A model generated the notes under the pieces. It had not been told where the DNA came from and ran no database searches. It worked only from the letters and a program-made list of their open reading frames with translations. From positions 1-64,000 of IMG/VR virus record IMGVR_UViG_3300047499_000113: DNA of 64,000 nucleotides; one strand, written 5' to 3'. The position numbers were made by a program, and so were the translations under genes. This document shows, in pieces, positions 2,372-46,175 of this stretch (position 1 is its first letter; each line of letters starts with the position of its first letter).

Positions 2372-3219
2372 TAGAACCTCTTGCTCGGCTTGACGCCCTT
2401 ACCGAAGTTTTCGAACCCTGACGGCATTTCATCGGGCGCATCGGGCACAGACCGGATTTGCCTGACTGGAGCCTTCGGCTTAGGCGAAGGAGACGCTACC
2501 GGTTCCTTTCTTGGGGTAGGGGCTGGACTCGGACTGGCATGTACAGGCTCTGGAGCGAGCGGGCTGCTCTCGAGCGATGTTGGCGGCGGAGGTACGTAAT
2601 TGTCCGGCAGAATCGCTTCGACCCGGACTTGAACGAGGGAGCGCAGGATGGCGCCAATGGTCTCGGACCAAGCGAAACTGCTATCGTGGAAAGGCTCGCG
2701 TTTGTCCGACACCATCCACAGGGGTTGCTTGCGGTCGAGCCTGTAGCACATCGCCTCTTCGAGAGCACCAGAGGCGGCCCGGTTCTTGGACTTGAGTTCG
2801 TTGAGCTTGATGAGGAGAAGGTCCGGGGATTTGACCAAGTCCTCGATGTTGTTGTAGACAGGCTCTTTGCTGAACTCACCACGAGCCTTGGACGACGTCG
2901 ACCCGACGTAAACGTCGCGGATTTCGCGGTCAGACGTGATGCGGACGAACTTGTTGCTATACTTGATCATGACGAGCTTGATGAAAGCTCGCATGTCAGC
3001 CTGGTAGGCCGTGATGTGCAGCGATCTGTTGATGGCGTCCATCAGGCGCGTCTTGCCGTCCGGAAGAAGCGCCCTGATATGGCCCTCGAGGACCGGGGCC
3101 GTGCGGATGAAGGCGGGCATGGCCGCAGCGATGCGCCGAAGCTCGGCGCACTCGCATTCGTAGAGCTTTCCCTCGCGCTCTACGACGCCTTGTCCTCCGC
3201 AAATCGCACAGGCAGCCAC
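2371..3219 (-). CDS. DnaC/IstB-like helicase-loader homologue, degenerate ATPase
   Basis: N-terminal Zn motif CAICGGQG...CEC; PDLLLIKL at the Walker B position; R..RKQPLWMVSD segment; overlaps dnaB start; no intact P-loop. Confidence 0.6.
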   Translation of the reverse strand: MAACAICGGQGVVEREGKLYECECAELRRIAAAMPAFIRTAPVLEGHIRALLPDGKTRLMDAINRSLHITAYQADMRAFIKLVMIKYSNKFVRITSDREIRDVYVGSTSSKARGEFSKEPVYNNIEDLVKSPDLLLIKLNELKSKNRAASGALEEAMCYRLDRKQPLWMVSDKREPFHDSSFAWSETIGAILRSLVQVRVEAILPDNYVPPPPTSLESSPLAPEPVHASPSPAPTPRKEPVASPSPKPKAPVRQIRSVPDAPDEMPSGFENFGKGVKPSKRF

Positions 3220-3230
3220 GGGCCGGGACC

Positions 3231-24731: not shown

Positions 24732-26891
24732 TTATGGATTCCCGATAGATGCGTAAATGGAAACCCCGTCCCACACCAATCGACCGCCGAACGGTGCAGG
24801 AATCGTCACTGACGAGATCTCAGATCCGATCTGAGTCTCCGTACCCACTCCTGTCGTGTAGCGGAATAGACCTCGAGTCGGGAAATCAGCGACGGTAACC
24901 CAAATGGCTGTGGGAGTTATGACCGCGGAACTGTTTCCACCAATAGGTGGAACCCACGTCGACACTTCAAGATTAGTCGATGTGCTAACGCGACTGACGC
25001 TCTCGCTCTCATCACCAACCAGAATAGTGCCGAACGTGGCATCGTAGCTCAAGGCGCTTGATGTGCTTGTAGAAGTGACGATGTTCGTGAATGCACCGCC
25101 AGCGGGGAACGCGGTCGGATCGACTCGGAAAAGATTCCCCGAGTACCCGCTAAAGACGGAGCCCGTGGACGCCCAGATAGACCCGGCCGCCGCAAGAACG
25201 AACTGGATGCACGGGTAGGCACTTCCTGTTCCCGGGAAATCGAAGTGAGAAATTTCGACCAGAGTGCTCGTGTTTAGCTTCACGAGTGACTCGGTGACTC
25301 CAGTTTCGTTTTGAGTACCTGCGAAAACGGTCCCCGTCACTGGGTCATAGGCACAAGCGTGGTATCCACGCTGTACGGGCGAAGTGACCGATGGTCCGAT
25401 AGCCGACGGATATGAGGACAACGCCGTGGCAATGGAATACTTCTGGATGTTGCTGCTTGTGAGGCTCGAGTAGTTACTCGCAACGATGTAGATGTTGCCA
25501 GCCCCGTCGAGGGTTTGGTCCTGCACGGTAAGACCGGCACCGGCATCCAGCATCCCAACGATAGCACCTGTCGTCTTGTTGACGATGATCAGGTACCTAT
25601 CGAATCCGAACCCGTTAGAGATGTAGACGTAGTTGGAGTCACCGATGACTCGACTGGCGCCGTTTCCAATGGCAGTAAGATCAACCGCTAGGTCTCCAGC
25701 TTGAGTAGCTGCCTTTATCGAGACGGCCGTGCCGAGCTTCTGGTCGGCCACCCACACATTGTCGTTGGGAGCGTCGTAGAACAGATCTCTGGGGCTAGAG
25801 AAACTGACTGTATCGCCAGACGCCGGCAGTGGAATCACTGGACCAGCGTTTCCAGACGTCAGGTCCCACGCGTAGATCGTCGGAATACCAGAATTGCTCG
25901 CAAGAATACGAGCAAACCGTCCATCCGAGATCATATCCAGGGCCGTCACACCGGTCGCGATTGTACTCACTTGAGTAAGCGAGTAGGTAGAGAAATTGAT
26001 AGAGAATTTGACTAGACTTTGGCTAGTGTTATATGCGACCCAAAGGAATCCGGCGTCATCGAGAAACATCGCGTTTGGCGCGTCGCCTGTTGTAAACGCA
26101 TCGTGAATGGTGCCAACAGAATCCACGATGTAGATGTGCCCGTTGGTCGCGCTGAAAGCGAATTGCGGGGTGGTGCTTAGAACTGGGTCACCACCACCGC
26201 CTCCAATGAAGCACGCACGCACGGGTGCTGACGTCGTCGCAGTGTGGTAACTCTGGACGTAATACATGTTCGGGGGCGTGCCATTGATTGTTCCGCATTC
26301 TACGAACAACCCGTCGGGAAAAGCCCCGAAAATGTTATCCTGAGGAGACGGGAACACCGTTCCCGTCTGGCCACGAATGCCGATCAAGTCGACCGGCGTG
26401 TCCCCATAATTGGTCAGCGAGCCACTCATCACTGATTGCGGAACGAACAGGTCGATACCAACGAGAGCACCCGGTGTTTTGGAATATCCAACATAGAAAA
26501 ACTTGTCACCGATGAAACATGTGGCGATTCCAGCCACCTGAGTTAGATAGTCGGTGAGTACGCTGATCCCGAGGTTGGCTGGAAAAATGTAGCCGGGGGA
26601 TATTGGCGTATTGGAAGCGAGCAAATCGTTCCTTCGCAGGAATGGCTGCTTCCTTGTGCGCAGAGTAGTCGCGTTATCCGTGAACCCACCGCCGCCTGTG
26701 ATGTTGATCGTAGCCACACCGCTGCCGGCGTCCGCCGCGGTCACACTCCCAGTGAGATTGAGGATGGTATGCGGGTTATTCGGGATGGGAGTGCCAGCCT
26801 GCTCGATGCTGACACCCGGAGTCCCACCACCAGCTCCCGATTCAACGGGAACGACGGGCTCTGGAGTAAGCTGTACGAACGGCCTGGGCAT
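24732..26891 (-). CDS. Beta-propeller tail/receptor-binding protein
   Basis: Contains a propeller paralogous to 19710..21275 and 21278..22735 (DLFYDAPNDNVWVAD...RYTTGVGTET) plus additional blades. Confidence 0.65.
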   Translation of the reverse strand: MPRPFVQLTPEPVVPVESGAGGGTPGVSIEQAGTPIPNNPHTILNLTGSVTAADAGSGVATINITGGGGFTDNATTLRTRKQPFLRRNDLLASNTPISPGYIFPANLGISVLTDYLTQVAGIATCFIGDKFFYVGYSKTPGALVGIDLFVPQSVMSGSLTNYGDTPVDLIGIRGQTGTVFPSPQDNIFGAFPDGLFVECGTINGTPPNMYYVQSYHTATTSAPVRACFIGGGGGDPVLSTTPQFAFSATNGHIYIVDSVGTIHDAFTTGDAPNAMFLDDAGFLWVAYNTSQSLVKFSINFSTYSLTQVSTIATGVTALDMISDGRFARILASNSGIPTIYAWDLTSGNAGPVIPLPASGDTVSFSSPRDLFYDAPNDNVWVADQKLGTAVSIKAATQAGDLAVDLTAIGNGASRVIGDSNYVYISNGFGFDRYLIIVNKTTGAIVGMLDAGAGLTVQDQTLDGAGNIYIVASNYSSLTSSNIQKYSIATALSSYPSAIGPSVTSPVQRGYHACAYDPVTGTVFAGTQNETGVTESLVKLNTSTLVEISHFDFPGTGSAYPCIQFVLAAAGSIWASTGSVFSGYSGNLFRVDPTAFPAGGAFTNIVTSTSTSSALSYDATFGTILVGDESESVSRVSTSTNLEVSTWVPPIGGNSSAVITPTAIWVTVADFPTRGLFRYTTGVGTETQIGSEISSVTIPAPFGGRLVWDGVSIYASIGNP

Positions 26892-31873: not shown

Positions 31874-34800
31874 TCAGCTCAGCACAGCGATGGAGAACGA
31901 ATTGGTCGCTGCAGTGCGTATCAGCTTGTAAGTGTGGAAATTCCCGTCTGCCCAGTTGAAAGCTCGACGGAAAAGGCACTTGTTGGCGTTGAGGTCCTGG
32001 ATCTTGATGAAGTTCACGCTGTTGACGGTGTCGAAACCGATGGCTGCCGTGAACCCGGGACCCGCCATGCCGCTGATACCGATGTAGATATTCGTGTCGC
32101 CCGTGATGGGGTCTGGCACCGCCGCGTTGATGCGCACGCTGAAGGTCACGTCGAAATCCAGCGACGTGGCGTCGGGTAGTCCGGACGGGCTGATGTACAC
32201 GGTCTTGGTACCTGTGCCCGTCGTGCTGTAACGCAAGAAGTCGGTCACGCCCACGCTCAGGAGCTGGAGGGTGACCGCTCCCGGATTGTCCGCCGCCAGG
32301 ACGAACGGCGTGAACTGCGCCACGTCGAGTCCGAGCTTGATTGACGCCGGCCCGCCGACGAAGATTGAAGAGGGTGGACCGATGGTGGGACTGGTCAGGC
32401 GCAGCCTTCCGTCGCCATTATTTGACGCAAAGTTCGCCGGGATTCCCGGCGTTCCGTTGATACGAGACACGACCGCGCCGATGGTAGTGTCCGTCGCCTG
32501 GAACTGGACGATAATCGGTGGGTTTGTATCGATCGCAATACTCAGATTATCGCCGGCCTCGATGGAGAATGGTTGAACATTGGCTCCGACCAAGTTGACC
32601 TGTTCGGGGAACGAGCCGCCTTCGTACGAGAGCGTGTGATCGGTCTGGTACTTCAGACCGCCCATGTGAAGGGTTTCGTCATCCGAAAACGGAGCGACGA
32701 GTCCAGCCTCTCCCGTCGTTATGGGGAAGAACTTCAGATTCTCGTACAGGACGCCGGACGGCGGGTCGATGTGAATGAAGATGGAGTTGCCGTGGACGCC
32801 CGGCTGAGTCAGGTGCAAGTTGTACGCGAGGTTGATGGCATCGGCGAGGACTGCCATCGTTCCTTCGTCGACAGCATCTGGGGCAGTCACCACATTCACG
32901 GTGTCATTCATCACGTGGGCGGGAGCGTCCGAGTCGTTGACGACGGCCACTCTGTGCGCGTTGAAGTTGGCCTTGAGGGCGTTCGCCAAGGCGATACCGG
33001 TCGGCAAATCCACCGCCGGCGGCAGGAGCACGGCGTCGAACTGGTCGTTGGACAAGTGCACGCGGTACTGCACGACGTGCTTGTTGAACGCCGCGAGGAG
33101 GTTGTTCAGGACAACGAGAGTTCCGGCGAGGAATGGCTGTACGACGAACGCCGTGCCGAGATTGTAGCCCTCGAGGTCCACGATGAGGTGGGAATCCTGG
33201 ACCAGGATGTGCTGGTTGTAGTGGTTGGCGAGGTTGTTCGCGAAGGTGATTCCGGTGGGCAGGTCGACAGGCGGAGAATCGGAGTCGCTGTTGAAGCGGT
33301 CGATCCCTTTGTGCACGCCGGGCGCGTTCGGTCGATCGACGTTGACGATGTGCCGATTGAACTGAGTCTCGATGTCCGGCAGGAGGGCGAGAGCGCTCGG
33401 CAGGTCGAAGCAGGGCGGAGCTGTCGAAATGTCGACAGTGTCTGGCCGAACGTGCACTCCCACTTCCGACAAGTGGGCGTTGTAGAACGCCTGCAGGTCG
33501 TTGGACAGAGTGATGAGAGTCGGCAGATCCGATGCGGTGAGAGGCTCGAGGTTGATGATGTCGATGACGTTGTGAGGCCAGGTCCTTTCGACGTGCTCGA
33601 CGAAGACCTGTTGGAAATTCTGCACCAGAGTGGCCAGGCTGGGTGCATCCGTCGCCGGCGGAGCCGTAATGGCGAACAGAGTGTCCGCGATGACGTGGAC
33701 GCCGGCGGCCACGCGGTGAGCTTCGTAATTCGTGCGCACCTGATTCATCGCCGAGATGGCGTTGGGCAAGTTGAACATGCCCGGGATGGGAACGGTGTCT
33801 CCTGGATCGTTCGTCTGATGAACGCCTGGCGAAATGAGGTGATTGTTGAAGGTCGGAATGACCTGCGTGAAGACGATGGAAATGAGTTCCGTGATGGGCG
33901 TGTCGGACGACGTCGCGTTGGTGGTGTCGTCCTCGAGGTCTGAGAGGAACCCACTCTCATCGACGAACTGAAGGGCGGGGACGGCCTCTTGCAGAGTCGC
34001 GGTCTTGCTCAGCCCACCACGCGACTGCAAATCCTGCGTCATGGGCACCGGAGGAGTGCCCTCGCCCAGGTTTGTGAAGGCGGCCAGAGCCGGGTTCGAC
34101 AAGAAGTCGTCGGAAGGAGTCCCTCCCGAGTAAACCGTGAAACCTGCGTGCTCATGTGGCAGCTGAGTGTGCAGGTGCTCAGGAGAGACGACCGCGTTGG
34201 CCTGATTGAGCGTCTGGTGCGGCGGGATGAGGCGATTGGTCAGCGTCAGCTTGCCGATCGAATACTTGATCGGACCCCAAATGACGCGAGCGATTTCTTC
34301 GGGGTCGAAACACCCGAACGCGATGCATTCCCTGTTGCCAGTAATCGGCTGCAGGAAACTCGCCGCAACCCCTGGAAGCTTGATAGCGTCGTAGTTGATG
34401 GAGATGACGGGGATGTTACCGCCGTCGAGAAAGACGGACACATTCCCTGACGGGTCACGCACCACACGATAAGTGTGGGACTGAGTCCAATCGACCTGAG
34501 AGATGTAGTACGAGGCAAGAAGCGACGGATCTCCGCCCGAGTAGATACCGATGAATCTCCTGGAAGCCGCCGTAGGATCTGCGACCTTCAGGTCGCGGAA
34601 TCCGCAGACCGACCTCCAGTCGACCACGGACATCGCTGTACTCGGGTCGCCGTTGCCGACCGCCGTACCGCCAGACCCAAAAGTCATGGCTGGACCGACG
34701 ACACCAGGGTGGAGGCTGTTGTACGAGAAATTCCCGAGCGAGATGTTATCGCCCAGGACTATGCAGATCCCGGCTGTCTTGTTCGTGAACAGGTCGACTG

Positions 34801-37800
34801 AGTGGATCTGCCCATCATTCCAGGCGAACGGGAAAGCTGCTTGCTGATCGAGAAAGCCGGTTGTCGAATTGTACGACAGCACATTGATATATGTGCCGCC
34901 GAATTGGTCTACCGCGTACTGCAGCTCTACATTCTTGCCGGACGTGCCTTCATCGACGTTGACGAGGACTCCAGCGAATTGCAAATTGGTCCCCGAGACG
35001 ATCGGGTTCCCCGGAGTGAATGACACGACAGCGAGCCGGAAGTCGACCTTCCAGTCCACAGCGGGATTGAAGACGGGGCTCGTGTACAGAGTGTTGTTCA
35101 GAGTGTAGACAAGGAAGTCGCTGGTGCTCGAGTCCGTGATCCGCATCGTGCGGCCGAGCATCTCGGACGCCTGGCTTCCAGAAGCCACCCAGTCTGGCGT
35201 GTCCTGGTCCGGGAAAGTCGCGCCAAACCAAGAGACTTTGGGTTCAGGATTGGAGTCGCGTCCGAAGTATGTGCCCAGGGCCAGACCCAACTTCTCCAGT
35301 GCGTTTCCGCCGAGAAGTCGGAGCTGAGAATTCGCGCCGAGCGTCTGATCCGTCAGAACGATGGCGCCGGAGCCGTTGTCCGCGGCGAGCGCGAAGCCTA
35401 CCGCGGCGTTGATGACGGTCGAAACCTGCGCTGTGGTCGTCGCTGGTGAGGTGAAAGTGACGGTGATGGGCTCCGCCGAACCGATGCCAATAATGGCGGT
35501 GTCGTTGGTGGCGATGCCGAAAGGTTGCGTCGATGTCCCGGTGACAGTGGCCGCGCTCGGGGTGTCCTGCAGGAACAGAAGCCACGTCGAGAAGATGTCA
35601 TCGTCGATGAAGACGCCGGCGCCCTTGTTGTCCAGGCTGAATGTGTAGAATCCAAGGCTCGCCGTGAACTCCACGGTGCTGGCGGCCACTCGAGTGAGGA
35701 TAGGCTCGAGCCGCAAGAACCCGCGATACGCACCGGTTGTCATACCGAGCGCGGCAATGTCATCGAGCGGAGCGCTGGCAGTCGAATCCAGGACGAGCTT
35801 GTTGAGCGACAGTCGCTCGAAACCCGACTGCCCAATAGTGATCCACGGGGCGGTGGGGTCGAGTTCCGGGAGGACCGTGGGCTCGTAGTCGACCGCTTTG
35901 TTGTCGCCAATCTGGTCTTCGTCGATGGGCGTGACATCAACGCGGATGAAAGCCCACTTGCTGGTCGAAGTGCTTCGGCGCCACACAGCACCGAAGAACA
36001 CTTGCGACATCGGATTGAGCCGAATGTCGACGTCGGACGTTGCAGGAAGCTGCGCGTGGGTCACGCTTGCTGTGGGGACAACAGCGCCGCTGGTGTAGAG
36101 GGAAACGTTCCCCTCCGAGTCGCGGAAGATGCGGTAAGTCGCGTCGATGGACCAGTTGACTGCTCCACTGACCCAGCTGTCCTCGAACTCCGGGAAGCCA
36201 GAGTTGGTGAGAAACCCGATCTGCTGCACCAGACCCACCGAGTTGACGGTGTCGTTGTTGTAGTGGATGCCAGGAGCGGTCAGGTGCGTGTTGAGGTTGT
36301 CACGCAGCTGGTTGACCAGGGCGAGAGCGCTCGGGAGATCTGTCGAGTCCGGCGCCGTAATCTGGTCGGCCGAGTCAGCGAGCACGTGAATGTGACCGCC
36401 GCCGTAGGACATGTGCTGATTCATCAGCACTTTGAGGCGGTTCGCGAGGATGATGAGAGAGGTGAGATCCGTCGCGTTGACGATATCCACCGTGTCTATA
36501 GTGTCGTTCGGCCGATGCACACCCGTAAGGATAAGGTGAGCGTCGAAAGCGGCCGACAGATCGTTCACCATTGCAATGGCGGACGAAAGATTATTGGCGT
36601 CGGTGAGGAGCAAGCCGACCAGAGCGACTTTTTGACCATCCGCGAGGCCGAAGCCGACGCCCGTGAAGGTCCCATCCGGAACGGTCTGCGACACGCTCAC
36701 GCGGAAAGCTGCGGAGACTGTGCTGTCGAAAGTGAGGTCGATGGGATGCGTGTAGAAAGGAGGCTCGATTCCCGGACCTGGACTCGGGTTAGAGTCCACA
36801 ATGGTGAGCCCGGTCCCTCCAGGAGCCAAGCTCATCGTGCCTTGACCCTCGAGCGTCCAGGGGTCTGTCGCCTGATCGGGCAGAGCCGTCGGGTCGTACC
36901 TAATCACGACCTCGAACACTTCAGCGTTGAGGACCGGGAAGAAAACCCGGTTAGTTGGCACGTTCAGCAGCAGCGTGTTCGGATCGTTGAGGACAGCGCT
37001 GTAGCTGCGCTGGAGCATCTTGTACTTCCAGCCCGTGCGCAGCGGTTGATACGGAGACTTGATGGTGGGAAGCGCGTTCGTCGGGTCGACGAGGGTTGCT
37101 TTGGCCCGATACGTGTAACCCGGCACGCCCATGAATCCGCGGTTGCCGGATTCGTTGAGGACGAACTCTGGAGAGTTGAGCCTCTGAAACTGCGTCGGTG
37201 GATTTCCGAGAAAATCGTAGTTGATGGTGACGGTGTCGGTCGGTTGTGGTGTGTTCGTCAGCACCACTGCACCGAGGAGACCGAAGACAGCGTCGACACT
37301 GGTCTCGATGCCGTTGACGAAGACCTGCACATCTGCAGGGCTGTCAGCCACTTCCCCGATGCGCGGGTCCGAGAGAACCCAATTGAATGGACCGATGTTG
37401 ACGCCCGACTGGAAGGCGACTTGAGCGGATGGAACCGTGACCCTGTCGACCGTGTCTCTCTCGTAGTGGTAGACGCCGCTGTCACGGTGAAGTTCGTACG
37501 CTTGCCGGAGAGCGTTGGCCAGATAGAACGCGCTTGCCAGATTGCTCGCTGGCGGCAAGAGCACGACGTCTTGCGAGTCAGGATTGAGGTGAACGGGAGG
37601 AACGCCGCCGGTGAGCCCGATGTGGTTGAGGAACTTCGGCAGAAGCTCGTTGAGGAGAATGATCACACTCGACAAGTCCACCGAATTTTGCGCCAGAACC
37701 ACGTCTGCCGGGTCGATGGTGCCGTGCACATATGGCGGCGCTCCCGTCCCGCCATTGACCACGTGGGCGTTGAACTCAGCCTTGATGTTGTTGGCCAAGG

Positions 37801-38116
37801 CAACGACGGCCGCAAGCGTCACCTGAGGATCCGAAGCGTCTAGCGTCGCGTTGCCAAGTGCCAGAGTCGTCGAATTCGGCACCGCCGCGATGGGAAAAGT
37901 GCCATCATTGCGTCCGTGCGGACTGCCGGAGATGGTGATCGTCTTGCCGATGAAGGTCAGGTCGAACGATGCAGTCGGGATCTGCACCAGGTTCGGACCG
38001 ATGACCATGAGGTTGGAGCCTGTGAGCAGCGGGAGTGGCTGCTTGACGATCACACCCTTGTTGGTGAACAAGGTGCGGTCGCGCACAGACTGGAGGGCGG
38101 AGAGCGGGACAGTCAT
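31874..38116 (-). CDS. Giant virion protein (2080 aa) with 15 His-pair helical repeats and lectin-like beta domains
   Basis: Repeats DL-x7-N-xL-x3-(F/Y)N-xH...GVH-x3-D in clusters of 3, 3 and 9; beta-sandwich segments; INAA...LGL modules. Confidence 0.75.
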   Translation of the reverse strand: MTVPLSALQSVRDRTLFTNKGVIVKQPLPLLTGSNLMVIGPNLVQIPTASFDLTFIGKTITISGSPHGRNDGTFPIAAVPNSTTLALGNATLDASDPQVTLAAVVALANNIKAEFNAHVVNGGTGAPPYVHGTIDPADVVLAQNSVDLSSVIILLNELLPKFLNHIGLTGGVPPVHLNPDSQDVVLLPPASNLASAFYLANALRQAYELHRDSGVYHYERDTVDRVTVPSAQVAFQSGVNIGPFNWVLSDPRIGEVADSPADVQVFVNGIETSVDAVFGLLGAVVLTNTPQPTDTVTINYDFLGNPPTQFQRLNSPEFVLNESGNRGFMGVPGYTYRAKATLVDPTNALPTIKSPYQPLRTGWKYKMLQRSYSAVLNDPNTLLLNVPTNRVFFPVLNAEVFEVVIRYDPTALPDQATDPWTLEGQGTMSLAPGGTGLTIVDSNPSPGPGIEPPFYTHPIDLTFDSTVSAAFRVSVSQTVPDGTFTGVGFGLADGQKVALVGLLLTDANNLSSAIAMVNDLSAAFDAHLILTGVHRPNDTIDTVDIVNATDLTSLIILANRLKVLMNQHMSYGGGHIHVLADSADQITAPDSTDLPSALALVNQLRDNLNTHLTAPGIHYNNDTVNSVGLVQQIGFLTNSGFPEFEDSWVSGAVNWSIDATYRIFRDSEGNVSLYTSGAVVPTASVTHAQLPATSDVDIRLNPMSQVFFGAVWRRSTSTSKWAFIRVDVTPIDEDQIGDNKAVDYEPTVLPELDPTAPWITIGQSGFERLSLNKLVLDSTASAPLDDIAALGMTTGAYRGFLRLEPILTRVAASTVEFTASLGFYTFSLDNKGAGVFIDDDIFSTWLLFLQDTPSAATVTGTSTQPFGIATNDTAIIGIGSAEPITVTFTSPATTTAQVSTVINAAVGFALAADNGSGAIVLTDQTLGANSQLRLLGGNALEKLGLALGTYFGRDSNPEPKVSWFGATFPDQDTPDWVASGSQASEMLGRTMRITDSSTSDFLVYTLNNTLYTSPVFNPAVDWKVDFRLAVVSFTPGNPIVSGTNLQFAGVLVNVDEGTSGKNVELQYAVDQFGGTYINVLSYNSTTGFLDQQAAFPFAWNDGQIHSVDLFTNKTAGICIVLGDNISLGNFSYNSLHPGVVGPAMTFGSGGTAVGNGDPSTAMSVVDWRSVCGFRDLKVADPTAASRRFIGIYSGGDPSLLASYYISQVDWTQSHTYRVVRDPSGNVSVFLDGGNIPVISINYDAIKLPGVAASFLQPITGNRECIAFGCFDPEEIARVIWGPIKYSIGKLTLTNRLIPPHQTLNQANAVVSPEHLHTQLPHEHAGFTVYSGGTPSDDFLSNPALAAFTNLGEGTPPVPMTQDLQSRGGLSKTATLQEAVPALQFVDESGFLSDLEDDTTNATSSDTPITELISIVFTQVIPTFNNHLISPGVHQTNDPGDTVPIPGMFNLPNAISAMNQVRTNYEAHRVAAGVHVIADTLFAITAPPATDAPSLATLVQNFQQVFVEHVERTWPHNVIDIINLEPLTASDLPTLITLSNDLQAFYNAHLSEVGVHVRPDTVDISTAPPCFDLPSALALLPDIETQFNRHIVNVDRPNAPGVHKGIDRFNSDSDSPPVDLPTGITFANNLANHYNQHILVQDSHLIVDLEGYNLGTAFVVQPFLAGTLVVLNNLLAAFNKHVVQYRVHLSNDQFDAVLLPPAVDLPTGIALANALKANFNAHRVAVVNDSDAPAHVMNDTVNVVTAPDAVDEGTMAVLADAINLAYNLHLTQPGVHGNSIFIHIDPPSGVLYENLKFFPITTGEAGLVAPFSDDETLHMGGLKYQTDHTLSYEGGSFPEQVNLVGANVQPFSIEAGDNLSIAIDTNPPIIVQFQATDTTIGAVVSRINGTPGIPANFASNNGDGRLRLTSPTIGPPSSIFVGGPASIKLGLDVAQFTPFVLAADNPGAVTLQLLSVGVTDFLRYSTTGTGTKTVYISPSGLPDATSLDFDVTFSVRINAAVPDPITGDTNIYIGISGMAGPGFTAAIGFDTVNSVNFIKIQDLNANKCLFRRAFNWADGNFHTYKLIRTAATNSFSIAVLS

Positions 38117-40158
38117 CAGGCGCTCACGATCTCGTTTCCGTAGAGGTCCTGCACTCCGTAGATATCAAGAGAGTATTGGGCTTTGGCCATTCCGATGACG
38201 TTGATGCTCAGAACTCTATCGTCGACCCACTCCGAGCCCTTCGTCAACAGTCCCGGTGGCCCAGTAATGACGATGTCCGCCGGCGTGAGTGCGGCCGGGC
38301 GGATGGGTTTAGAGAAGTAGACTTGCACGGCGTCCTGCTCCCAGCGAACACCATTGTTCGTATCGACTACGCCAATCTTCGGGATGGCCGACGCTACGAA
38401 TGGAGGCGGCTCCACACCGATGAAGGGAGCCTGGATCATGAACCTCCTCGGCACGGTGCCGTTCCTCACGTCGATGAAGGAATACTGCGATTGCGCCTTC
38501 ACCTGATAGGCCGCACCGTTGAGCATCCCGAGGTCGATCTGAAGAGTGTCGTAGAGTTTGGCCGAGTAGAGCGACACGCCAGCGGAATTGTGAACGCCCA
38601 CGTTCACGTTGTGCGCCGTGAACGAGTTGGTCAGCCGCTCGAGAAGCAGAACGGCGGAGGGGAGGTCCGTCGCGTACCGCATCCGGACCAAGTTCGGATC
38701 CGGATAGTTGTGGTAGACAGTCGAGCTGGCGTGGTCGAGGTAGATGTCGCGCACGCGGTTGACTGCGGCGATGGCCGAAGCGAGACTGGCTACCGGGAAT
38801 TCGCTCGGCAAGAAGTAGTTGATGAAGTCGGGTTGCACATGTCCCGCGCCGTACGGCGTCGTGATGTGCTGATTGTACGACTGCATCAGGTCGGTGACGG
38901 CCAGAACGAGAGCCTGGATGGAAGCGGTGACGTCGGCTCCGTCTGTAGGAACAGCGCTCGTTGGTCCAAGCACTGAAAGACTTTGGAGTGCCGGAAGCTG
39001 GATTCCCTGCGAGAATCGGAAACCCGCTTGTTGCGGGATCACCTGAGTGCCGACCACACGAGGCGGCGTCGCCAGAGGAAGAACTGAAATGCTGCCTGTG
39101 TAATCACCAGGATTCGTTGTACGAGCGAGATCTTCGCTTTGAATTTGCGCAGTCAGCTGGTACGACGGATTCGGGCTCGTCGCCGCGACCTCCACCTGGG
39201 CGAAATACGTGCAGGTATCCACCGCCGGGAACGCGAGGCCGTCCTGTGCCGAACTCCAATCGCGCACCGACTTGATGACCACGGGCGAACCGTTGGACGT
39301 CACCGTCCAGTTCGCGGTGTTGATGACCTCAGCATGGGCCATCGTGCAGCTGAAGAACACGTTGATGAAGGCGCGGTTGTACCCGCTGGGTGCGTCGGAA
39401 ACGCTGTCGACCCATGCATCGATGATCTGCGGCTGGCTGAGGACAGCGTATGTGTAAGGCTGCGGTGCCCGCAAAGTCAGTGACAGAGGGATAGTAGCCT
39501 GCACTTGATTGTACGACCCGTCGACCACGTCCGCGAACGAGATGGTGTAGCTCGAGGCTGTGTCCATCGCCGGATTCAGCTCGAACCGAAGGACGTTGGC
39601 CGGGAACGATCCATCCCACGGAATGCGGGTCATGGGTTGAGGTGTCCCTCCCATTGCCGCCTGGATGGTCGCTGTGCACGCTGGAGAACTCGGACCTACG
39701 GACCGGTCGAAATAGATGTCGACCATATTCCGGAGCGAGAGAAACGCTCCGATGGCCAGAGGAGGGTTCGGCACGTTTGCCCGAAAGTTTCCAGCACTCG
39801 GAGTCACACTGTTGCCATCTGGACTCGTGACGCCGACGATGGAGAGCGCGTAGACCGTCTGGAATGTGAGCGACTGATTGAGCGTGAGGGCGACGGACCT
39901 ATGGTCCGCGTCGTAGAAAGAGACGGTGACTACGACCGGGACGTAGTTCGGGACCGGGCCGCTGACGGCGAGCATCGAGTAAGCGCCCGGTTGAAGGGCG
40001 GACTCGTCAACTTGGTCGTCGAACTGAACTCGAATAGTTCGCTGATCAAGCACGTGCGGTGTGAACCCGAACGGCAGAGGCGGAAACTGGCCGATACCGC
40101 CAAGAACGATCTTGCCTAGCTGGCTACCGGCGCCTCCGAGCTGTCCAGTGAACGGCAT
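38116..40158 (-). CDS. Virion protein with Ig-like (Big_5-type) domains and three His-pair repeats
   Basis: TIRVQFDDQVD, VDIYFDRSV, VQVYFSKPI...GVQDLYGN Ig-like patterns; YNQH...GH, YLDH...YH, FTAH...GVH. Confidence 0.7.
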   Translation of the reverse strand: MPFTGQLGGAGSQLGKIVLGGIGQFPPLPFGFTPHVLDQRTIRVQFDDQVDESALQPGAYSMLAVSGPVPNYVPVVVTVSFYDADHRSVALTLNQSLTFQTVYALSIVGVTSPDGNSVTPSAGNFRANVPNPPLAIGAFLSLRNMVDIYFDRSVGPSSPACTATIQAAMGGTPQPMTRIPWDGSFPANVLRFELNPAMDTASSYTISFADVVDGSYNQVQATIPLSLTLRAPQPYTYAVLSQPQIIDAWVDSVSDAPSGYNRAFINVFFSCTMAHAEVINTANWTVTSNGSPVVIKSVRDWSSAQDGLAFPAVDTCTYFAQVEVAATSPNPSYQLTAQIQSEDLARTTNPGDYTGSISVLPLATPPRVVGTQVIPQQAGFRFSQGIQLPALQSLSVLGPTSAVPTDGADVTASIQALVLAVTDLMQSYNQHITTPYGAGHVQPDFINYFLPSEFPVASLASAIAAVNRVRDIYLDHASSTVYHNYPDPNLVRMRYATDLPSAVLLLERLTNSFTAHNVNVGVHNSAGVSLYSAKLYDTLQIDLGMLNGAAYQVKAQSQYSFIDVRNGTVPRRFMIQAPFIGVEPPPFVASAIPKIGVVDTNNGVRWEQDAVQVYFSKPIRPAALTPADIVITGPPGLLTKGSEWVDDRVLSINVIGMAKAQYSLDIYGVQDLYGNEIVSA

Positions 40159-40169
40159 AAGGCACCTTA

Positions 40170-41795
40170 CTAGAAGGTAGCGATCAGCATCCAGTCATTT
40201 TGCCCGTCGCTGACAAACATGTAGGAGGTGCGTGAACTGACGGGTGTGAACGAGAGCCCAGTCTGCCCGTCCATTGTGTCCGCCCCGGTTGGAACCAAGC
40301 CGACTGCATTCGTCGAGGTCGCGATGGCCTTGACCACGATGGGAATGCCGTAGTAGAGAGCGGCCTCAGGGAAGAGGACGTTGACCGGCTGGTGCGTGGA
40401 ATTCACGCGCACGATCTGTCCGGGCTCCGCAAGGACAGTGATCGCCGATTGCTCAGGCGTGGGGGAATAGCTGGTGTTGATGGGCCCGGTGACGCCTTGC
40501 GGTCCCTGAATACCCGTAGCACCGATGGGCCCTTGAGGACCTGTGGCGCCTTGCGGTCCAGTCGGTCCGATGGCACCCTGAGGACCAATATCGCCGGTCG
40601 GGCCCTGTACACCAGTGGCTCCCGGGGGCCCGCCAAAAGGACCAGTTGGTCCTTGATCTCCCTGCGGCCCCGTGGCACCCGCAGGTCCGGTCGGACCCGT
40701 CGCGCCCGTGAGACCCTGGTTTCCTTGGGGGCCCTGGACGCCGGTCGCGCCTTGCGGGCCGGTCGCCCCAACAGGGCCAGTTGGCCCGAGAGGGCCGGTG
40801 AATCCGATAGGCCCGGGAGTCCCTTCGATACCCTGGACGCCGGTCGCTCCTTGGGGTCCCGTCGCACCTTGCGGGCCGACTGCACCCGTAGGGCCGGGCG
40901 GACCACCGAATGGGCCGGTGGGTCCTTGCGGACCAGCGGAGCCCGTTGGTCCGGCAGGCCCTGCAGGGCCTGTTGCACCAGCTTGACCGGTTCCCTCGAG
41001 CGCAATGGCTGAAAGGTTGCCCGCGTCGAACTGGATTTGGTTGCCACCTACGCTTCGCCACTGGACTTTGACGGTATACGTCCCGGCGGGAAGTTGAGTG
41101 CTAACAAAGTTGTTCGAGACAATTGCGGCTTCGTTAGTGTTCACCTCATTGCGCCGAATCTCCGAGCTAAGTTGCCCGTCGATGTAGAGAATGATGCCGA
41201 TGGACTCCGTGGTGCTAATCTGCTCCCACTGGATATCGGTTTGAGCGTAAATAGCGCAAGTTGCGCTGGTCGTAATAGTCGTGCCGAGCCCAGGAACATC
41301 GACAAACGACGTCGACGTAGTTGTGGCGGGCCCGACTGCAGATGCGTAGGCAGAATCGATCGGGTTGTTCGGACCTGCAGGCCCTGTAGCGCCATCAGCC
41401 CCGGTGGCTCCCGGGATACCCTGCGGCCCCTGGATTCCCTGCGGACCCTGAGGGCCAGTGGAGCCCTGCGGACCGATTGCCCCGGTTGGTCCCTGGACAC
41501 CGGTGGGCCCGATGGTGCCCTCGACGAAATTGGTCAGAGCGCCAGCAGTCAAAACGTGAGTGACAGTCGCTCCCGGGAGGTGCTGAGCCGGAGGCGTGTT
41601 CTCGATGCCGCGGATGACAGAGAAGACGCTGCCCTGAATACCCGTCACCAGCATCAACTCGTTGTCGATGCGGATGCGGAACTGCGGCGCCGGCGGGAAC
41701 TGGGTGACGTTCGTCGTCTGGACGTAGTTCGTCACTGCGTCCAGCGGCAGCTGCAGAGTCCCCTGGGCTGTGTTGGCAAATTGCTCTTGGGCCAT
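40170..41795 (-). CDS. Collagen-like tail fibre
   Basis: Two long Gly-X-Y tracts (approx. 41370-41520 and 40485-40995) flanking a beta-sandwich; fibre-type N-terminus ([10 protein letters not shown]...RGIENT) and gp34-like C-terminal repeat. Confidence 0.85.
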
Positions 41796-41844: not shown

Positions 41845-42690
41845 CTAGAAATCGCTGCTGTGATCTTCTCCGACCACTTGCTTGGCCCGTTTGAAGCCCG
41901 CGGTGTCCAACCCGGCGATCCCCTCGACGAACTTCCGGAAGTCCTCGTAGCTGTAGTTCGAGAGCGCGAAGGTGAACGAATCCGTCACCTTGGCTGGCTG
42001 CGGAGAGACCCCGTTCGGCCCGGGAGGTTGCTGCTGGCCGATGTAGGTATCTTGCAGGATATACTTGAGTCTGTAGAGCGTGTGCGCCGGACGGATGATC
42101 CCGAGCAGAAGTCGGATGTTCTTGTCGGCCAGGAAAATGTCGACGTTTTGGTTGGCGAACGGCAAGAAGATATCGACCTCGAAGCCGAACTCATCCGAGA
42201 TGTCGAGACCTGACGCCGGATTGCGCGCCTCGAGGAAGTTCTCCCGCACGATGACTGTGCCGCCAGTCACCAGTTCGACAGCCTTCTGAATGGACGCTGG
42301 AATGGAGCCCTTGAAGTAGATGGAGACGAGCTGCTGCAAGAACGCGCGAAATTGCAAATCAGTCTGGTCGATGGTCGGCATTTGGCCGGCGCCGTAGCCG
42401 AACGACTTCGGGAAAAGCATGACAGTGAGGACCTGCCACAGATACTCGCCGCGCGTCGCCGAGAAGTATGTGTCGTTCTGGATGTCCGAGAGCATGAGGC
42501 GGACTCGAGCCAGAGCGATAGCCATCGCCTTTAGCTCGCGCGCATAGTTCGGGCCGTCGATCTTCGAGGTGAAGTATGACGACAGAAGCGAAATGAGAAT
42601 GGTGAACTCGCGCTGAGTTTCCTGCAGGAGACGGTTGTTGTACTCCTCACCACTCTCGAAGACGTTCTGGTTAACCCGAACGATGGCCAT
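41845..42690 (-). CDS. Baseplate wedge protein, P2 gpI/XkdU-like
   Basis: Follows baseplate J; FRAFL...YFKGSIPASIQKAV...LLGIIRPAHT motif. Confidence 0.7.
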   Translation of the reverse strand: MAIVRVNQNVFESGEEYNNRLLQETQREFTILISLLSSYFTSKIDGPNYARELKAMAIALARVRLMLSDIQNDTYFSATRGEYLWQVLTVMLFPKSFGYGAGQMPTIDQTDLQFRAFLQQLVSIYFKGSIPASIQKAVELVTGGTVIVRENFLEARNPASGLDISDEFGFEVDIFLPFANQNVDIFLADKNIRLLLGIIRPAHTLYRLKYILQDTYIGQQQPPGPNGVSPQPAKVTDSFTFALSNYSYEDFRKFVEGIAGLDTAGFKRAKQVVGEDHSSDF

Positions 42691-45600
42691 CAGCTACCCG
42701 TTGCTGCTCGGTACGTGATGGTGAGGCTCCCCGGCGTGAGGTACTCGACCGACGAAGTCGAGATGTCCTTCGACCCAGTGTCCTTGTTGACGATGTAGGT
42801 CGCCGAGAACGTGTGGTTTCCCGGAACGTCAGGCGGCTGGATGCCATTGTTGAGCGAGATGACCACGTGATTGGCCGTCAAAGCGATTCTCGCCGCGGCG
42901 ATGGCAGACGGAGTGACGTATGTCGGGGCGAGCGTCGCATCGTCCGAGTAACCTTGGATGATGGCGCCCTGTGCGCCGATAATCCAAGCCTGTCCGACGG
43001 CGGAACCAACAGTTGCCAGTGACATCGCCGGCGTCATCTGCAGGTTGTCCATGAAGACGCCGTGGAAGATGGTCGCGGGACCGCCGCCGTCTGTCGTGTT
43101 GAACGGAAGAGCCTGCTGCAGAATGTAGACCGCATTGTTGAATTGAGACAGAGACGACAGGAAGATTCCGTCCGGAGGAATCGAATCACGCAGCCGCATG
43201 GCGCCCGTCGCCAAGGTAAGCTGCGTGAACGGCTGCACGATGAACTGCACGCCCGTGTCCGAGTCTTTGACCGTTTGGGTCATATCGGACTGATAGATCG
43301 TGCCGCCAACCGGCTTCGAGTCCGTGAGCACGGTGACTGCTGTACGGATGTTGCTATCGACCGATACCTGGTTAGCGTTGGGGTTGAGCTGCACGGTCAT
43401 CTCGGTCGACAGTGGATTTTCGACTGCCTGCTTGACCAAGACGTCGGCCGTCGCGTGCCGCATCGTCGCGTACTGCGACTGGAGCTGCTGCAGAACGTCG
43501 TTGATGACGTACGTAACGGCAAAGTTCTCGTCGTGTTCGTAGTCGACCGAGACCGTGGCTCCCGTAGGAATCGTGGAGCTGCTCGAACGCACGATTTGCA
43601 ACGGCGTGGTCTGCGTTCCAGGAATGATGAGATAATCGGCGTTCGGCGAACTCGGGCCGTTGTATTGGATGGTCCTGTCTTGCGAGTACACGTTCAAACT
43701 GAACGTGTTGACGCCGACCGAATCGAGCGGCTCGTTGATCTCTCCGATGAGAACGTGCAGCTCGTTGTTGACCGCGATGGATGCGCCAGAAGGAACCGAC
43801 CCGATTTGGTTGATCTCGATGTAGTCGGTCGCGATGGTGCTCTCTCCATCGATGAGAGGATCCTGCAGCTTGTACAGGGTGTACCCGTTGACCGAGTCGA
43901 GAGCGCCAGAAACCTGTCCGACGACTGACGTGACCCGCAAGATAGGCTGCAGAGTCGCCGTGAACTGGTTGTTGCTTCGGTACCGATAGTCGCCCTCGAT
44001 GAAGTCGTCGATGTTGGTGGTCGGCTGCGGAATGAGCGTCGAGAGCTGGATGGTGTTGTAGTTCAGGATGACGACGCCAGTCAGGTCGTATGCAGCGGTT
44101 GGCAGGATCGAGTGGTTGTAGAGCCCGAGGTCTTGCGACGGGTTGAAGAGCATCTGCTCTATCGGGTTGTTCTGCGAAAGCCGCGAGTCCTGCGCTTGGA
44201 AGATGAGATTGACGGCGTCGATGACGGTGAATTTGACGTTGTTCGCTTCCTGGAACTGGAAAGCGAAAGTCTCGGTCACCGTGCGCTCGTTGGTTCCCTT
44301 GACGTAGACATCGACTTTGCCGCCGATGTGCTTCATGCGCACTGGGTCCCAGTCGCGCTCCATGAACGGATCACCGGCCTGGATGACCGCCACTTGCAGG
44401 ACGCCGGGCGTCGCCAGAGCGGTCTTTTGGTAACCTCCGGGAGTGCCTGTGTCGAGCGACGACAAGGCATTCATCGACAGCTCGGCCACATCCAGGTTGC
44501 TGCCTTGGTCTTGGCCGAAGTTTGCTGACACCTCGTTGATCGTCTGCAGTCCGGTGGCTCCGGAGCTGACCGTGTCGAGAGATCCCGCCGGCACGTTCCC
44601 CGCGGAACCCGGCGTCTGTGCGATCATCTGAACGGTGATTTCGTACCGCTTGGTCTGCGGATTGTAGTACGCCTGCGCGTTGGCAGCCGAGAGCGTGACC
44701 TGTCCCTTGGTCACGAACGTCGGCGCCGCGGTATTCGTCGACGAGCTGACAATGGCTCCCTGGATGACGATGAGGTCCTTCGTCGGCAGAGCCGTCGTGT
44801 AGAAAGTCTGCGTCACCTGCGCCGGCAAAGGCCCGGGACGAGTCACACCGTAGTTCTGCGCGAGAGAATCGAACGCAGAGTTGATGATGGTCTGGACCGT
44901 CGCATCGTCGAAAACCGTGAGCGCCGTCTTGAGGTTCTGCTTGTACTGCGACTGCGCAACCGGGATGGAAATTCCAGTCAGGCCCGGGTCGTCGATGGCA
45001 AGAAGCGCCGGGAACGACTTGCTCCTCGAGACGAAGTCCGCCAGAAAGTAGGCTTTCTGGATTTCGTTCGAGAACGGCTCGATGTGAACCTCGCGGACGG
45101 TGCTGCCCGGGATGAGGCTCAGGGTCGGATTGGTCTTTTGGATCTCGCCGATGTAGTCCTGGGCGACCGAGCTTTGATCCCGGATGCGGATGCCGCGTAC
45201 TTGAGTATTGAGCGGCAGCGGCGCTCCCGTCAACTCCGCCGAGTAGCGACTCTCCTGAAGGACTCCTGTAGTCGTGTCGAAGTACACAGCCGTGATGACG
45301 TAATAGAGCGGCTGCGAGTTGTCGACCACCGAGAAGGTGTCGTTGTTCAGGATGCCGGATCCGAGGCTCGCCGTCCTGTCGTGGTTGAACAGGAAGTTGT
45401 TGACCTGCAGGAGCTTGGTGACCGTGACCTCGTACCTGTAGGCGTCAGCCGTGATTAGCGGGATGAAGTTCACCGCCTGCGTAGCGATGGTCTCCTGGGT
45501 CACGGGGTCTGTGGTCGTGGCCACGACCTTGAGCTGCGCCGTGTTGAAGTTGGCGACCGCCGGATTCGGGAAGTCGTAGCTGACGTCCGAGAGCGGGAGC

Positions 45601-46142
45601 AGAGTTGTGTCTGTACTGATGGCCGCGCTATATGGAATGAGGTCTTGGTTGAGCTTCAGGTACCCGGAGCCTGTCCCTTGGGAGCCCGTCGAGCAGTAGA
45701 CGTTGAAGCCGACAGGTGCGATGGGCGAAGAGTCGGACCAAACGATGTCGACGCTCGTCGCGTGCCTGTTCAGCGAGATTCCAGTCGGTGGCGACTGGAC
45801 GGTGAGCAGGTCGACATCCGTGACCACCGTCACAGTGATAGTCGAGGTTGGGCTCACGCTGCCATTGAGGTCGATGGCACGGAGCTGGATGGTATTGATC
45901 CCGAGGTTCAGCTGCAGGCCGGACGGAATGCTCGCCGGATTGGGGATCGTGAAATTCGGCAGCACGAGCTGCACGAGCGTTGGATCCGATACGAACCCCG
46001 CGCCGTTGACGTTGATCTGGACGTCGATCGTCGACGAATCGACCGAGCCCGAAAAGAACAACGCGAACAAGTTCGTGGTCATCACCAGGTTGATGGTGGT
46101 GCCAGAACCGTCAGGGAAGTTGATCAGGGGCGCGGTCGCCAT
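42690..46142 (-). CDS. Baseplate J-like (gp6/gp47-type) wedge protein
   Basis: Likely start ATG 46142; IPGSTVRE, DSLAQNYGVTR, AQTPGSAGNVPAG, GTPGGY...PGVLQV...GKVDVYV. Confidence 0.85.
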   Translation of the reverse strand: MATAPLINFPDGSGTTINLVMTTNLFALFFSGSVDSSTIDVQINVNGAGFVSDPTLVQLVLPNFTIPNPASIPSGLQLNLGINTIQLRAIDLNGSVSPTSTITVTVVTDVDLLTVQSPPTGISLNRHATSVDIVWSDSSPIAPVGFNVYCSTGSQGTGSGYLKLNQDLIPYSAAISTDTTLLPLSDVSYDFPNPAVANFNTAQLKVVATTTDPVTQETIATQAVNFIPLITADAYRYEVTVTKLLQVNNFLFNHDRTASLGSGILNNDTFSVVDNSQPLYYVITAVYFDTTTGVLQESRYSAELTGAPLPLNTQVRGIRIRDQSSVAQDYIGEIQKTNPTLSLIPGSTVREVHIEPFSNEIQKAYFLADFVSRSKSFPALLAIDDPGLTGISIPVAQSQYKQNLKTALTVFDDATVQTIINSAFDSLAQNYGVTRPGPLPAQVTQTFYTTALPTKDLIVIQGAIVSSSTNTAAPTFVTKGQVTLSAANAQAYYNPQTKRYEITVQMIAQTPGSAGNVPAGSLDTVSSGATGLQTINEVSANFGQDQGSNLDVAELSMNALSSLDTGTPGGYQKTALATPGVLQVAVIQAGDPFMERDWDPVRMKHIGGKVDVYVKGTNERTVTETFAFQFQEANNVKFTVIDAVNLIFQAQDSRLSQNNPIEQMLFNPSQDLGLYNHSILPTAAYDLTGVVILNYNTIQLSTLIPQPTTNIDDFIEGDYRYRSNNQFTATLQPILRVTSVVGQVSGALDSVNGYTLYKLQDPLIDGESTIATDYIEINQIGSVPSGASIAVNNELHVLIGEINEPLDSVGVNTFSLNVYSQDRTIQYNGPSSPNADYLIIPGTQTTPLQIVRSSSSTIPTGATVSVDYEHDENFAVTYVINDVLQQLQSQYATMRHATADVLVKQAVENPLSTEMTVQLNPNANQVSVDSNIRTAVTVLTDSKPVGGTIYQSDMTQTVKDSDTGVQFIVQPFTQLTLATGAMRLRDSIPPDGIFLSSLSQFNNAVYILQQALPFNTTDGGGPATIFHGVFMDNLQMTPAMSLATVGSAVGQAWIIGAQGAIIQGYSDDATLAPTYVTPSAIAAARIALTANHVVISLNNGIQPPDVPGNHTFSATYIVNKDTGSKDISTSSVEYLTPGSLTITYRAATGS

Positions 46143-46175
46143 GCCTACCCACAATACGGGGATAAGAACTGGATG

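Follow-up and report, generated by a model that had tools for sequence, protein, structure and literature searches.

What is the repeated unit with paired histidines that recurs in two large proteins of an uncultivated giant phage, and does each group of three such units form one domain that may hold a metal ion? We examined the proteins in a window of 64,000 nucleotides (positions 1 to 64,000 of the 240-kb IMG/VR record IMGVR_UViG_3300047499_000113), in which a sequence-only reading had counted 18 copies of a unit of about 40 amino acids, P-x-A-x-DL-x7-N-x-L-x3-(F/Y)-N-x-H-x(6-13)-H-x3-D, in groups of three. It had proposed that each triplet is a single-chain pseudo-trimeric three-helix bundle with a six-His metal site (about six sites in total), inserted as a mobile domain into virion proteins. 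The observation holds: all 18 units are present on the minus strand, within about 25–40 nt of the positions originally assigned to them, and the motif is accurate. The interpretation is supported in part.

Genomic setting and distribution of the repeat

Fifteen units, or five triplets, are located in protein A (2080 aa, 31874–38116, minus strand), a virion protein of the tail/baseplate module, and three are located in protein B (680 aa, 38116–40158, minus strand), which also has an N-terminal Big_5 Ig-like domain. The ATG of gene A overlaps the stop codon of gene B by 1 nt. A collagen-like tail-fibre gene (40170–41795, minus strand; PF01391, E = 7e-31, with matches to tail-fibre PHROGs) lies immediately upstream of B, and a Baseplate_J/baseplate wedge subunit gene (42690–46154, minus strand; PF04865, E = 1.9e-10; phrog_6, E = 4e-19) places A and B in a baseplate/tail-fibre module.

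Specifically, triplet A-I occupies 37436–37840 (residues 93–227 of A, with His pairs 118/131, 165/176 and 210/217), and triplet A-II occupies 36233–36613 (residues 502–628, with His pairs 527/534, 568/577 and 611/618). The remaining nine units of A, at 32762–33916, were divided into triplets A-III (33551–33916; units 7–9, residues 1401–1522), A-IV (33155–33550; units 10–12, residues 1523–1654) and A-V (32762–33154; units 13–15, residues 1655–1785), with the phase taken from the structure prediction described below. The last arm of A-V lacks the Asp and runs into the next beta domain. Triplet B-I occupies 38560–38943 (residues 406–533 of B), and its six His (H431, H440, H476, H483, H516 and H523) are invariant in 17 homologues that are 35–80 per cent identical to B.

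The repeat is not a chance pattern. In a six-frame search of the whole record with a profile hidden Markov model (HMM) of the unit, each unit scored an i-Evalue of 1e-11 to 1e-16, and an HMM built mostly from foreign units recovered the same 18 (i-Evalues between 1e-13 and 1e-4). The only other hits are six units in a third protein outside the window (protein C, 86833–92763 of the record, minus strand), so that the copy numbers in this genome are 3, 3, 9, 3 and 6. Among the 18 window units, the two His are the only invariant columns, and they are separated by six residues in 12 units and by 8–12 residues in the other six. A profile of 360 units from the family gives P1 A3 D5 L6 S/T8 L12 N14 L16 Y/F20 N21 H23 x6 H30 x3 D34 x2 N37.

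The unit profile finds at least 936 protein clusters (at 50 per cent identity), but the module is nearly absent from cultured phages (1 of 50,697 records). A tblastn search of INPHARED returned one uncultured phage for the window triplet and none for the relative P0121, and a search of IMG/VR for loci related to protein B found no relatives. Fifty-eight small relatives fall into about 40 different non-repeat architectures, whose partners include Baseplate_J/phrog_6, the major tail PHROGs 9522, 10528 and 4574, baseplate PHROGs and head-fibre proteins. The same module is therefore fused to unrelated structural proteins and is mobile. The genes surrounding the small relatives that we inspected are unannotated, the source names are all "hypothetical protein", and no host was inferred.

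A match to an already characterised family had been named in advance as grounds for rejecting the proposal, and we found none in the collections searched. No Pfam hit covers the repeat in A or B, and a set of 122 triplets gave only scattered hits (STALD, DUF1467 and others) that we consider chance, as are the NCBIfam hits (lumazine synthase and others) and a triosephosphate isomerase hit in a profile search of PDB sequences. PF12789 (PTR) and PF22337 (Phage_fiber_rpt), suggested by an ESM-atlas feature search, have no match in the whole record. The closest lead is the 67-position PHROG profile phrog_6994 ("head fiber protein"), which weakly matches the helix half of the unit. It matched 8 of 58 small relatives, with a best whole-protein E-value of 1.4e-8 for the relative P0081, in which no single stretch was significant on its own, and it matched two units of this genome at E = 8e-4 and 2e-3. 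The matches cover only about 28 of 67 positions (approximately 26–57), proteins A and B do not reach E = 0.01 in an hmmscan search, and at the loose limit used for the genome search (E ≤ 10) the same search also gave hits in 6 of 14 unrelated control genomes; membership of this family is thus left undecided.

The triplet as the predicted unit of folding and the unit of change

AlphaFold2 folds triplet A-II (modelled from window positions 36221–36631) as a compact domain with a pLDDT of 96.6 and a pTM of 0.90. The model has three helices (residues 15–33, 56–74 and 99–117), and the linkers of 22–24 residues are also modelled at high confidence. The first His of each unit (H1) lies in the last turn of each predicted helix, whereas the second (H2) lies in a coil or beta-bridge. 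Convergence of the His in such a model had been proposed as a criterion for the metal site, but atomic coordinates were not examined, and neither the His geometry nor the helix orientation was inspected. For the nine-unit array, the model is only of moderate confidence (pLDDT of 67.8, based on six sequences), but confidence drops exactly after helices 3 and 6.

The predicted fold has no clear counterpart among solved or predicted structures. The best Foldseek match in the PDB has an E-value of 0.76 and a TM-score of 0.2, the best match in BFVD has an E-value of 1.1, and among AFDB clusters only two uncharacterised sequence homologues were found (TM-scores of 0.74–0.80). In a wider structural search (VIA), the best Z score was 6.7, to generic helical proteins. 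Weak resemblances are to other pseudo-threefold or parallel-core designs, namely single-chain gp41-5 (Z = 5.9) and the BARA domain of Vps30/Atg6 and Beclin 1 (PDB 3vp7 and 4ddp; Z = 5.2–5.5, about 107 residues aligned at about 3.2 Å), but these scores are at noise level for helical proteins. As proposed for the triplet, the BARA domain is a single chain of three repeats, each an extended element plus a helix, that close with pseudo-threefold symmetry into a compact domain. However, it is a eukaryotic membrane-binding domain without the His set and without sequence similarity to the triplet; the comparison is a topological analogy only and does not settle a relationship.

Whether copy number is a multiple of three in homologues had also been set out as a test, and the claim that it always is proved too strong. 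It holds in this genome, but by HMM count it holds for 98 of 148 representative proteins (binomial P-value = 3e-16 against 1/3), and 84 per cent of runs of three or more units are multiples of three. Most apparent deviations are degenerate units that fall below the threshold, but genuine exceptions exist (relatives P0081, P0115 and P0076), including a period-2 super-repeat in which every second arm lacks His (P0081) and 25-residue helix-only units; the unit can therefore also be used in another assembly mode. Orthologues of A (1800–2580 aa) share its layout and always have 3 + 3 units at the N-terminus, whereas most of their C-terminal arrays span about 3, 6, 9, 12 or 18 units, indicating that the triplet is the unit of change. 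Additionally, 12 of 152 isolated triplets are circularly permuted (arm-helix-arm-helix-arm-helix), yet they retain three helices and three arms and, in the seven examples read, six His, which is what a closed ring predicts.

The six His are near-invariant across the family. In the alignment of 122 triplets, five His columns are invariant and the sixth is His in 110 of 122; of 288 full-length triplet matches, 280 have six His and eight have five; and very diverged units still keep an H...H pair. Because almost no triplet has lost a His, co-loss of the His could not be analysed, and a mean-field direct coupling analysis (DCA) of the 288 triplets was discarded because it was dominated by terminal-gap and alignment-shift artefacts. 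In the unit profile, hydrophobic positions 6, 9/10, 13, 16 and 20 are followed by H23, forming an a/d stripe with H1 in a "d" core position, and N21 and D34 are conserved next to the His and could be second-shell partners. The H1–H2 loop tolerates 6–12 residues and, in protein C, a whole E1_FCCH domain, and it is therefore a surface loop at one pole.

A putative single-chain histidine cage

Taken together, we regard the triplet as a new domain family, probably with a new fold, and plausibly as a single-chain analogue of the HxH histidine cage. In the explanation that we favour, with moderate confidence, each group of three units of about 42 residues is one autonomous domain of about 125–135 residues. 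Each unit would comprise an amphipathic helix, whose last core position is H1, and an ordered, mostly extended arm that carries H2 in V-H-x3-D-x2-N. Three helices and three arms would close into a pseudo-threefold ring, with a parallel three-helix bundle as the core and the arms running back along it, bringing three H1 and three H2 to one pole. The most likely reason for the near-absolute conservation of the six His would be that they hold a buried metal ion on or near the pseudo-threefold axis, in one six-His site or in two stacked sites that also use the conserved Asp. The domain would then act as a rigid, metal-stapled building block or knob, spliced singly or in strings into exposed virion proteins, here in two proteins of the baseplate/tail-fibre module and elsewhere in baseplate wedge, tail tube and head-fibre proteins. 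Our analysis demonstrates the repeat and its distribution, the conservation of the six His, the modularity of the triplet and its circular permutation, and, as a prediction, the compact three-helix fold, whereas the parallel orientation of the helices, the convergence of the His, metal binding and the structural role are our inferences. Metal binding was not assayed and no metal complex was modelled, so that support for the metal site comes only from sequence logic (the six near-invariant His and the core position of H1).

The precedent for such a site is sound, as the sequence-only reading had assumed: in trimeric phage fibres and spikes (P2 gpV apex, T4 gp37, R-type pyocin fibre and phi92 spike), the intermolecular HxH cage binds Fe(II) (or Zn) octahedrally with six His (PMC6116203; bioRxiv 10.1101/2023.02.25.529910). 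As in those cages, two His per protomer-equivalent, times three, would give six His around a (pseudo)threefold axis in a phage tail or fibre protein, and the His are conserved far more strongly than the rest of the sequence. However, the three "protomers" here would be consecutive repeats of one chain, the motif is H-x(6–12)-H rather than HxH, H1 lies in a predicted alpha-helix rather than in beta-structure, and there is no sequence similarity to the known cages. No oligomer was modelled, and although the monomer model, the copy numbers and the circular permutation point indirectly to an intrachain arrangement, they do not decide between one chain and three. Moreover, the cage of P2 gpV is dispensable in the laboratory, so that conservation alone does not define a role. 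A His at an a/d core position of three parallel helices, the geometry implied by the heptad position of H1, gives a three-His metal site on the axis in designed three-stranded coiled coils that bind Zn(II) (TRI/CoilSer type), but those are synthetic peptides that assemble from three chains and have no second ring of His and no arms, and the comparison was not tested here. The module also resembles the accessory Ig-like, FN3, BACON and Big domains of phage structural proteins in being mobile, in being fused or inserted into unrelated virion proteins and in often occurring in tandem, but it has a predicted helical core with extended arms instead of a beta sandwich, and it carries the six-His signature.

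A bolder version of this reading, which we put forward only tentatively, is that the triplet is a new fold that recreates within one polypeptide the Fe/Zn-binding cage so far known only between three chains, as a portable "metal rivet" that uncultivated and giant phages string along baseplate, tail, fibre and head-fibre proteins. The period-2 and helix-only relatives would then be the trans-assembling, homotrimeric form of the same unit, and the family would capture an evolutionary transition between an intermolecular trimer and a single-chain pseudo-trimer. If the six His do hold a metal, the domain would be a single-chain form of a cage whose role is still debated and, as a monomer of about 130 residues, far easier to study than a trimeric fibre. 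Defining the family would annotate part of many very large "dark" virion proteins of giant phages, and the domain is a natural, compact, pseudo-symmetric three-helix scaffold with a probable axial metal site, which is of interest for protein design.

Alternative readings

The strongest alternative, which we nevertheless consider unlikely, retains the closed three-helix domain but without a metal: the His would form a buried polar layer, a His-Asp/Asn hydrogen-bond network or an anion/water site that fixes the register of the bundle or makes the domain pH-sensitive, acting as a trigger on acidification. The conserved N21, D34 and N37 sit next to the His and could pair with them directly, buried polar layers that set register are known in trimeric coiled coils, and the cage of P2 can be replaced by Phe with a wild-type phenotype. 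However, the retention of six His in 280 of 288 triplets, without any recurring conservative substitute such as Gln, Asn or Tyr, is more typical of ligands than of packing residues, and six imidazoles per domain at one pole, in two rings of three, would fit metal coordination. The pH-trigger and iron-mimicry roles suggested in the sequence-only reading were not examined.

It is doubtful that the helices instead assemble between chains, with the host proteins as homotrimers, true trimeric coiled coils, intermolecular His sites and an incidental triplet organisation. Collagen-like and fibre genes lie next door, and some relatives have arrays that are not multiples of three, with a period-2 or helix-only layout; one of these matches phrog_6994, and they may indeed assemble in trans. 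Against this reading, a single triplet is predicted to fold compactly without partners, copy number clusters on 3, 6, 9, 12 and 18, circular permutation conserves exactly three helices and three arms, and the module also sits in baseplate-wedge and major-tail proteins, which are not trimeric fibres.

Equally doubtful is a primary role as a binding module (an adhesin) for host-surface glycans or environmental polymers, like that of Ig-like, FN3 and BACON decorations on other phages, with the His as a binding or catalytic site rather than a structural staple: the domain is promiscuously fused to many exposed virion proteins, is displayed in many copies (eight domains in three proteins of this phage) and, in MW202476.1, is encoded between the portal/head-side genes and the tail sheath gene, but its conserved positions are the core stripe and the His/Asp/Asn, its surface positions are highly variable without an evident conserved patch, and nothing else in the sequence suggests catalysis, although binding and a structural metal are not mutually exclusive. 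We also considered and dropped an isopeptide or ester cross-link, because the only Lys-rich position is K/R-mixed and the S/T and D positions fit, by inference, a helix N-cap.

Genomic setting and occurrence of the repeat

The 240,015-bp IMG/VR virus record, of which the window covers the first 64 kb, is estimated by CheckV to be 56 per cent complete. It is therefore a fragment of a very large phage, whose genome is probably over 400 kb. Close homologs of protein B, the shorter of the two repeat-bearing proteins in the window, lie on contigs of 242-445 kb. The repeat-bearing genes sit in a long minus-strand block of large genes. In transcription order, this block comprises a Baseplate_J/baseplate-wedge gene (42690-46154; PF04865, E-value 1.9e-10; phrog_6, E-value 4e-19), a 281-aa open reading frame (ORF), a collagen-like tail-fiber gene directly upstream of the gene for protein B (40170-41795, minus strand), protein B itself (38116-40158; 680 aa, with an N-terminal Big_5 domain), and protein A (31874-38116; 2080 aa). 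The collagen-like gene encodes a 541-aa protein with long collagen triple-helix repeats (PF01391, E-value 7e-31) and matches to many tail-fiber PHROGs. The stop codon of gene B and the ATG of gene A overlap by one base (TGATG, 38114-38118), which suggests translational coupling of the two repeat-bearing proteins.

Most neighboring large proteins have no PHROG or Pfam match, and the same is true of many of the large minus-strand proteins of the record (up to 1789 aa). DnaB-like and other helicase genes lie at 845-5303. A 719-aa protein encoded at 24732-26891 (minus strand) has sub-threshold hits to NHL-repeat and 7-bladed beta-propeller families (E-values 0.003-0.009), and may be a propeller-type receptor-binding protein.

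Translation of the two genes and anchoring on the motif [F/Y/L]-x-x-H gave 15 units in protein A (aa 93-227, 502-628, and 1401-1785) and 3 units in protein B (aa 406-533). The observation made in the sequence-only reading, that 18 such units occur at these places, is thus confirmed. The 18 units align over about 41 columns, with 20-46 per cent identity to the reference unit, and exactly two columns, both His, are invariant. In a six-frame search of the whole record, a hidden Markov model (HMM) of the unit scored every unit at an i-Evalue of 1e-11 to 1e-16, and a second HMM, made from 360 units mostly of other proteins, recovered the same 18. The only other matches in the record are six units in a third giant protein, a 1977-codon open frame outside the window (86833-92763 of the record, minus strand). 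In the first triplet of this protein, E1_FCCH-like beta domains (PF16190, E-value 2.9e-10) are inserted between units, and one lies inside the loop between the two His of a unit. Copy numbers in this genome are therefore 3, 3, 9, 3, and 6.

Relationship to known families and distribution

A match to an already characterized family had been named in advance as an outcome that would count against the proposal, and we found no known family that covers the repeat. Pfam gave no match on the repeat in A or B, only noise for 122 triplets, and nothing consistent for 58 relatives. NCBIfam gave no match. A profile search of PDB sequences returned only a chance hit to TIM. Two families suggested by an ESM-atlas feature search, PF12789 and PF22337, do not match anywhere in the record. 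PHROGs gave no hit for A or B, although phrog_6994 ('head fiber protein', 67 positions) weakly matches the helix half of some units (E-values of 8e-4 and 2e-3 in this genome) and 8 of the 58 relatives; this is a lead and does not establish membership. The same profile weakly matches (E-value 0.018) a stretch at 20319-20411 (minus strand) within a 521-aa ORF (19710-21275), where the unit HMMs do not detect a unit. In the C-terminal part of A (32390-32527, aa 1864-1909), there is a weak Flagellin_IN-like motif (PF07196, E-value 0.06, below the cut-off), and by eye a similar 'I-x-V-x-F-...-I-N-...-G-x-L-x-L' stretch lies in the middle of A (about 35360-35550, aa ~855-920) and near the C-termini of some relatives. 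Literature searches found the intermolecular HxH histidine cage, but nothing like a single-chain version of it.

Among 1.84 billion cluster representatives, the unit profile finds 936 at E-value <=1e-3 and 431 at E-value <=1e-10. All source names seen are 'hypothetical protein', and the best ESM-atlas cluster is a 177-aa hypothetical protein family that is 91 per cent viral. Among 50,697 deposited phage genomes, only one uncultured phage (MW202476.1) matches, in which a 178-aa protein is encoded between the portal/head-side genes and the tail sheath gene. After masking of the repeat, 58 small relatives fall into about 40 unrelated architectures, and partner domains include Baseplate_J/phrog_6, other baseplate PHROGs, the major tail protein PHROGs 9522, 10528, and 4574, and head fiber. 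The module is mobile among virion proteins, as the sequence-only reading had proposed.

Three units as one predicted domain

Several lines of evidence indicate that three units make one domain. In the alignment of 122 triplets there are six His columns, of which five are invariant and the sixth is His in 110 of 122. Of 288 full-length triplet matches, 280 have six His and 8 have five. Modeling of a single triplet had been put forward as a test, and AlphaFold2 (AF2), run on the alignment of 122 triplets, folds A aa 496-632 with a mean pLDDT of 96.6 and a pTM of 0.90. This triplet was modeled from 36221-36631 (minus strand), and its six His are H527, H534, H568, H577, H611, and H618. The model has three helices (15-33, 56-74, and 99-117), and the connections of 22-24 residues between them are also predicted with confidence. 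The AF2 model of the nine-unit array of A, which uses only six sequences and reaches a pLDDT of 67.8 and a pTM of 0.42, gives nine helices and loses confidence exactly after helix 3 and helix 6. This suggests three beads with the phase units 7-9, 10-12, and 13-15.

Whether copy numbers in homologs are multiples of three had likewise been specified as a test. Orthologs of A always carry 3+3 units near the N-terminus, and most of their C-terminal arrays span about 3, 6, 9, 12, or 18 units, while several others are 4+5, split by an insertion. Across 148 representative proteins, the totals are multiples of three in 98 (P = 3e-16 against an expectation of 1/3), and 84 per cent of runs of three or more units are multiples of three. 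Apparent runs of one or two units are flanked by degenerate units that still keep an H...H pair. Additionally, 12 of 152 isolated triplets are circularly permuted: an arm of the type that carries the second His precedes helix 1 and none follows helix 3, so that three helices and three arms are kept. The seven permuted examples that were read also keep six His. A closed ring in which arm 3 packs beside helix 1 predicts exactly this arrangement.

Comparison of the predicted fold with known structures gave no clear counterpart. Foldseek found no match in the PDB (best E-value 0.76, TM 0.2) or in BFVD, and the AFDB clusters hold only two uncharacterized sequence homologs (TM 0.74-0.80). A search independent of Foldseek gave Z-scores of at most 6.7 to generic helical proteins, among them the BARA domain (three beta-alpha repeats; Z 5.2-5.5) and single-chain gp41-5 (Z 5.9). 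Both are consistent with, but do not prove, a parallel core with return elements. The repeat, which is real, highly non-random, and uncharacterized, is best described as a new domain family of ~130 residues and probably a new fold.

Placement of the histidines and departures from the rule of three

The profile of 360 units shows hydrophobic residues at positions 6, 9/10, 13, 16, and 20, followed by His at position 23 (H1; 100 per cent). This is an a/d heptad stripe whose next core 'd' position is the first His. The second His, at position 30 (H2), is 99 per cent conserved, is preceded by a hydrophobic residue, and is followed by D34 (88 per cent) and N37 (63 per cent), whereas N21 (58 per cent) precedes H1. 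If the three helices are parallel and in register, the three H1 residues face the axis in one layer and the three H2 residues lie a few residues further along at the same pole. Three equivalent repeats, long ordered return arms, and the circular permutation imply that arrangement, which was not seen directly. The loop between H1 and H2 varies from 6 to 12 residues and, in the third protein, hosts a whole E1_FCCH domain; it is therefore an exposed loop.

The interpretation offered in the sequence-only reading is thus supported in part. The evidence is good for the single-chain three-helix reading, which rests on a predicted structure together with the counts and the permutation, and for mobility among virion proteins, whereas the metal site is plausible and attractive but unproven, being inferred from the sequence. 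The key inference, that the six His of a triplet form a single octahedral site, was not put to the test, as neither the geometry of the His in the models nor a complex of the triplet with Fe was examined. Alternatives are a His3 site plus a His3/Asp3 site, three 2-His-1-Asp sites, or a metal-free polar layer.

The further claim that units always occur in multiples of three has real exceptions among the relatives. P0081, the relative that best matches phrog_6994, has an 81-aa super-repeat of period 2 in which every second unit lacks the arm His. P0115 has 25-aa helix-only units, and P0076 has an array of about ten units. These may be trans-assembling (homotrimeric) forms of the same unit, but that is speculation. 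Other relatives (P0028, P0040, P0041, and P0045) carry tandem repeats of ~17-18 aa of the arm motif alone (G-T-A-x-I-H-x-x-D-D-x-x-N-x-V-x-A) without the helix, and the His-Asp arm can therefore exist as an independent repeat.
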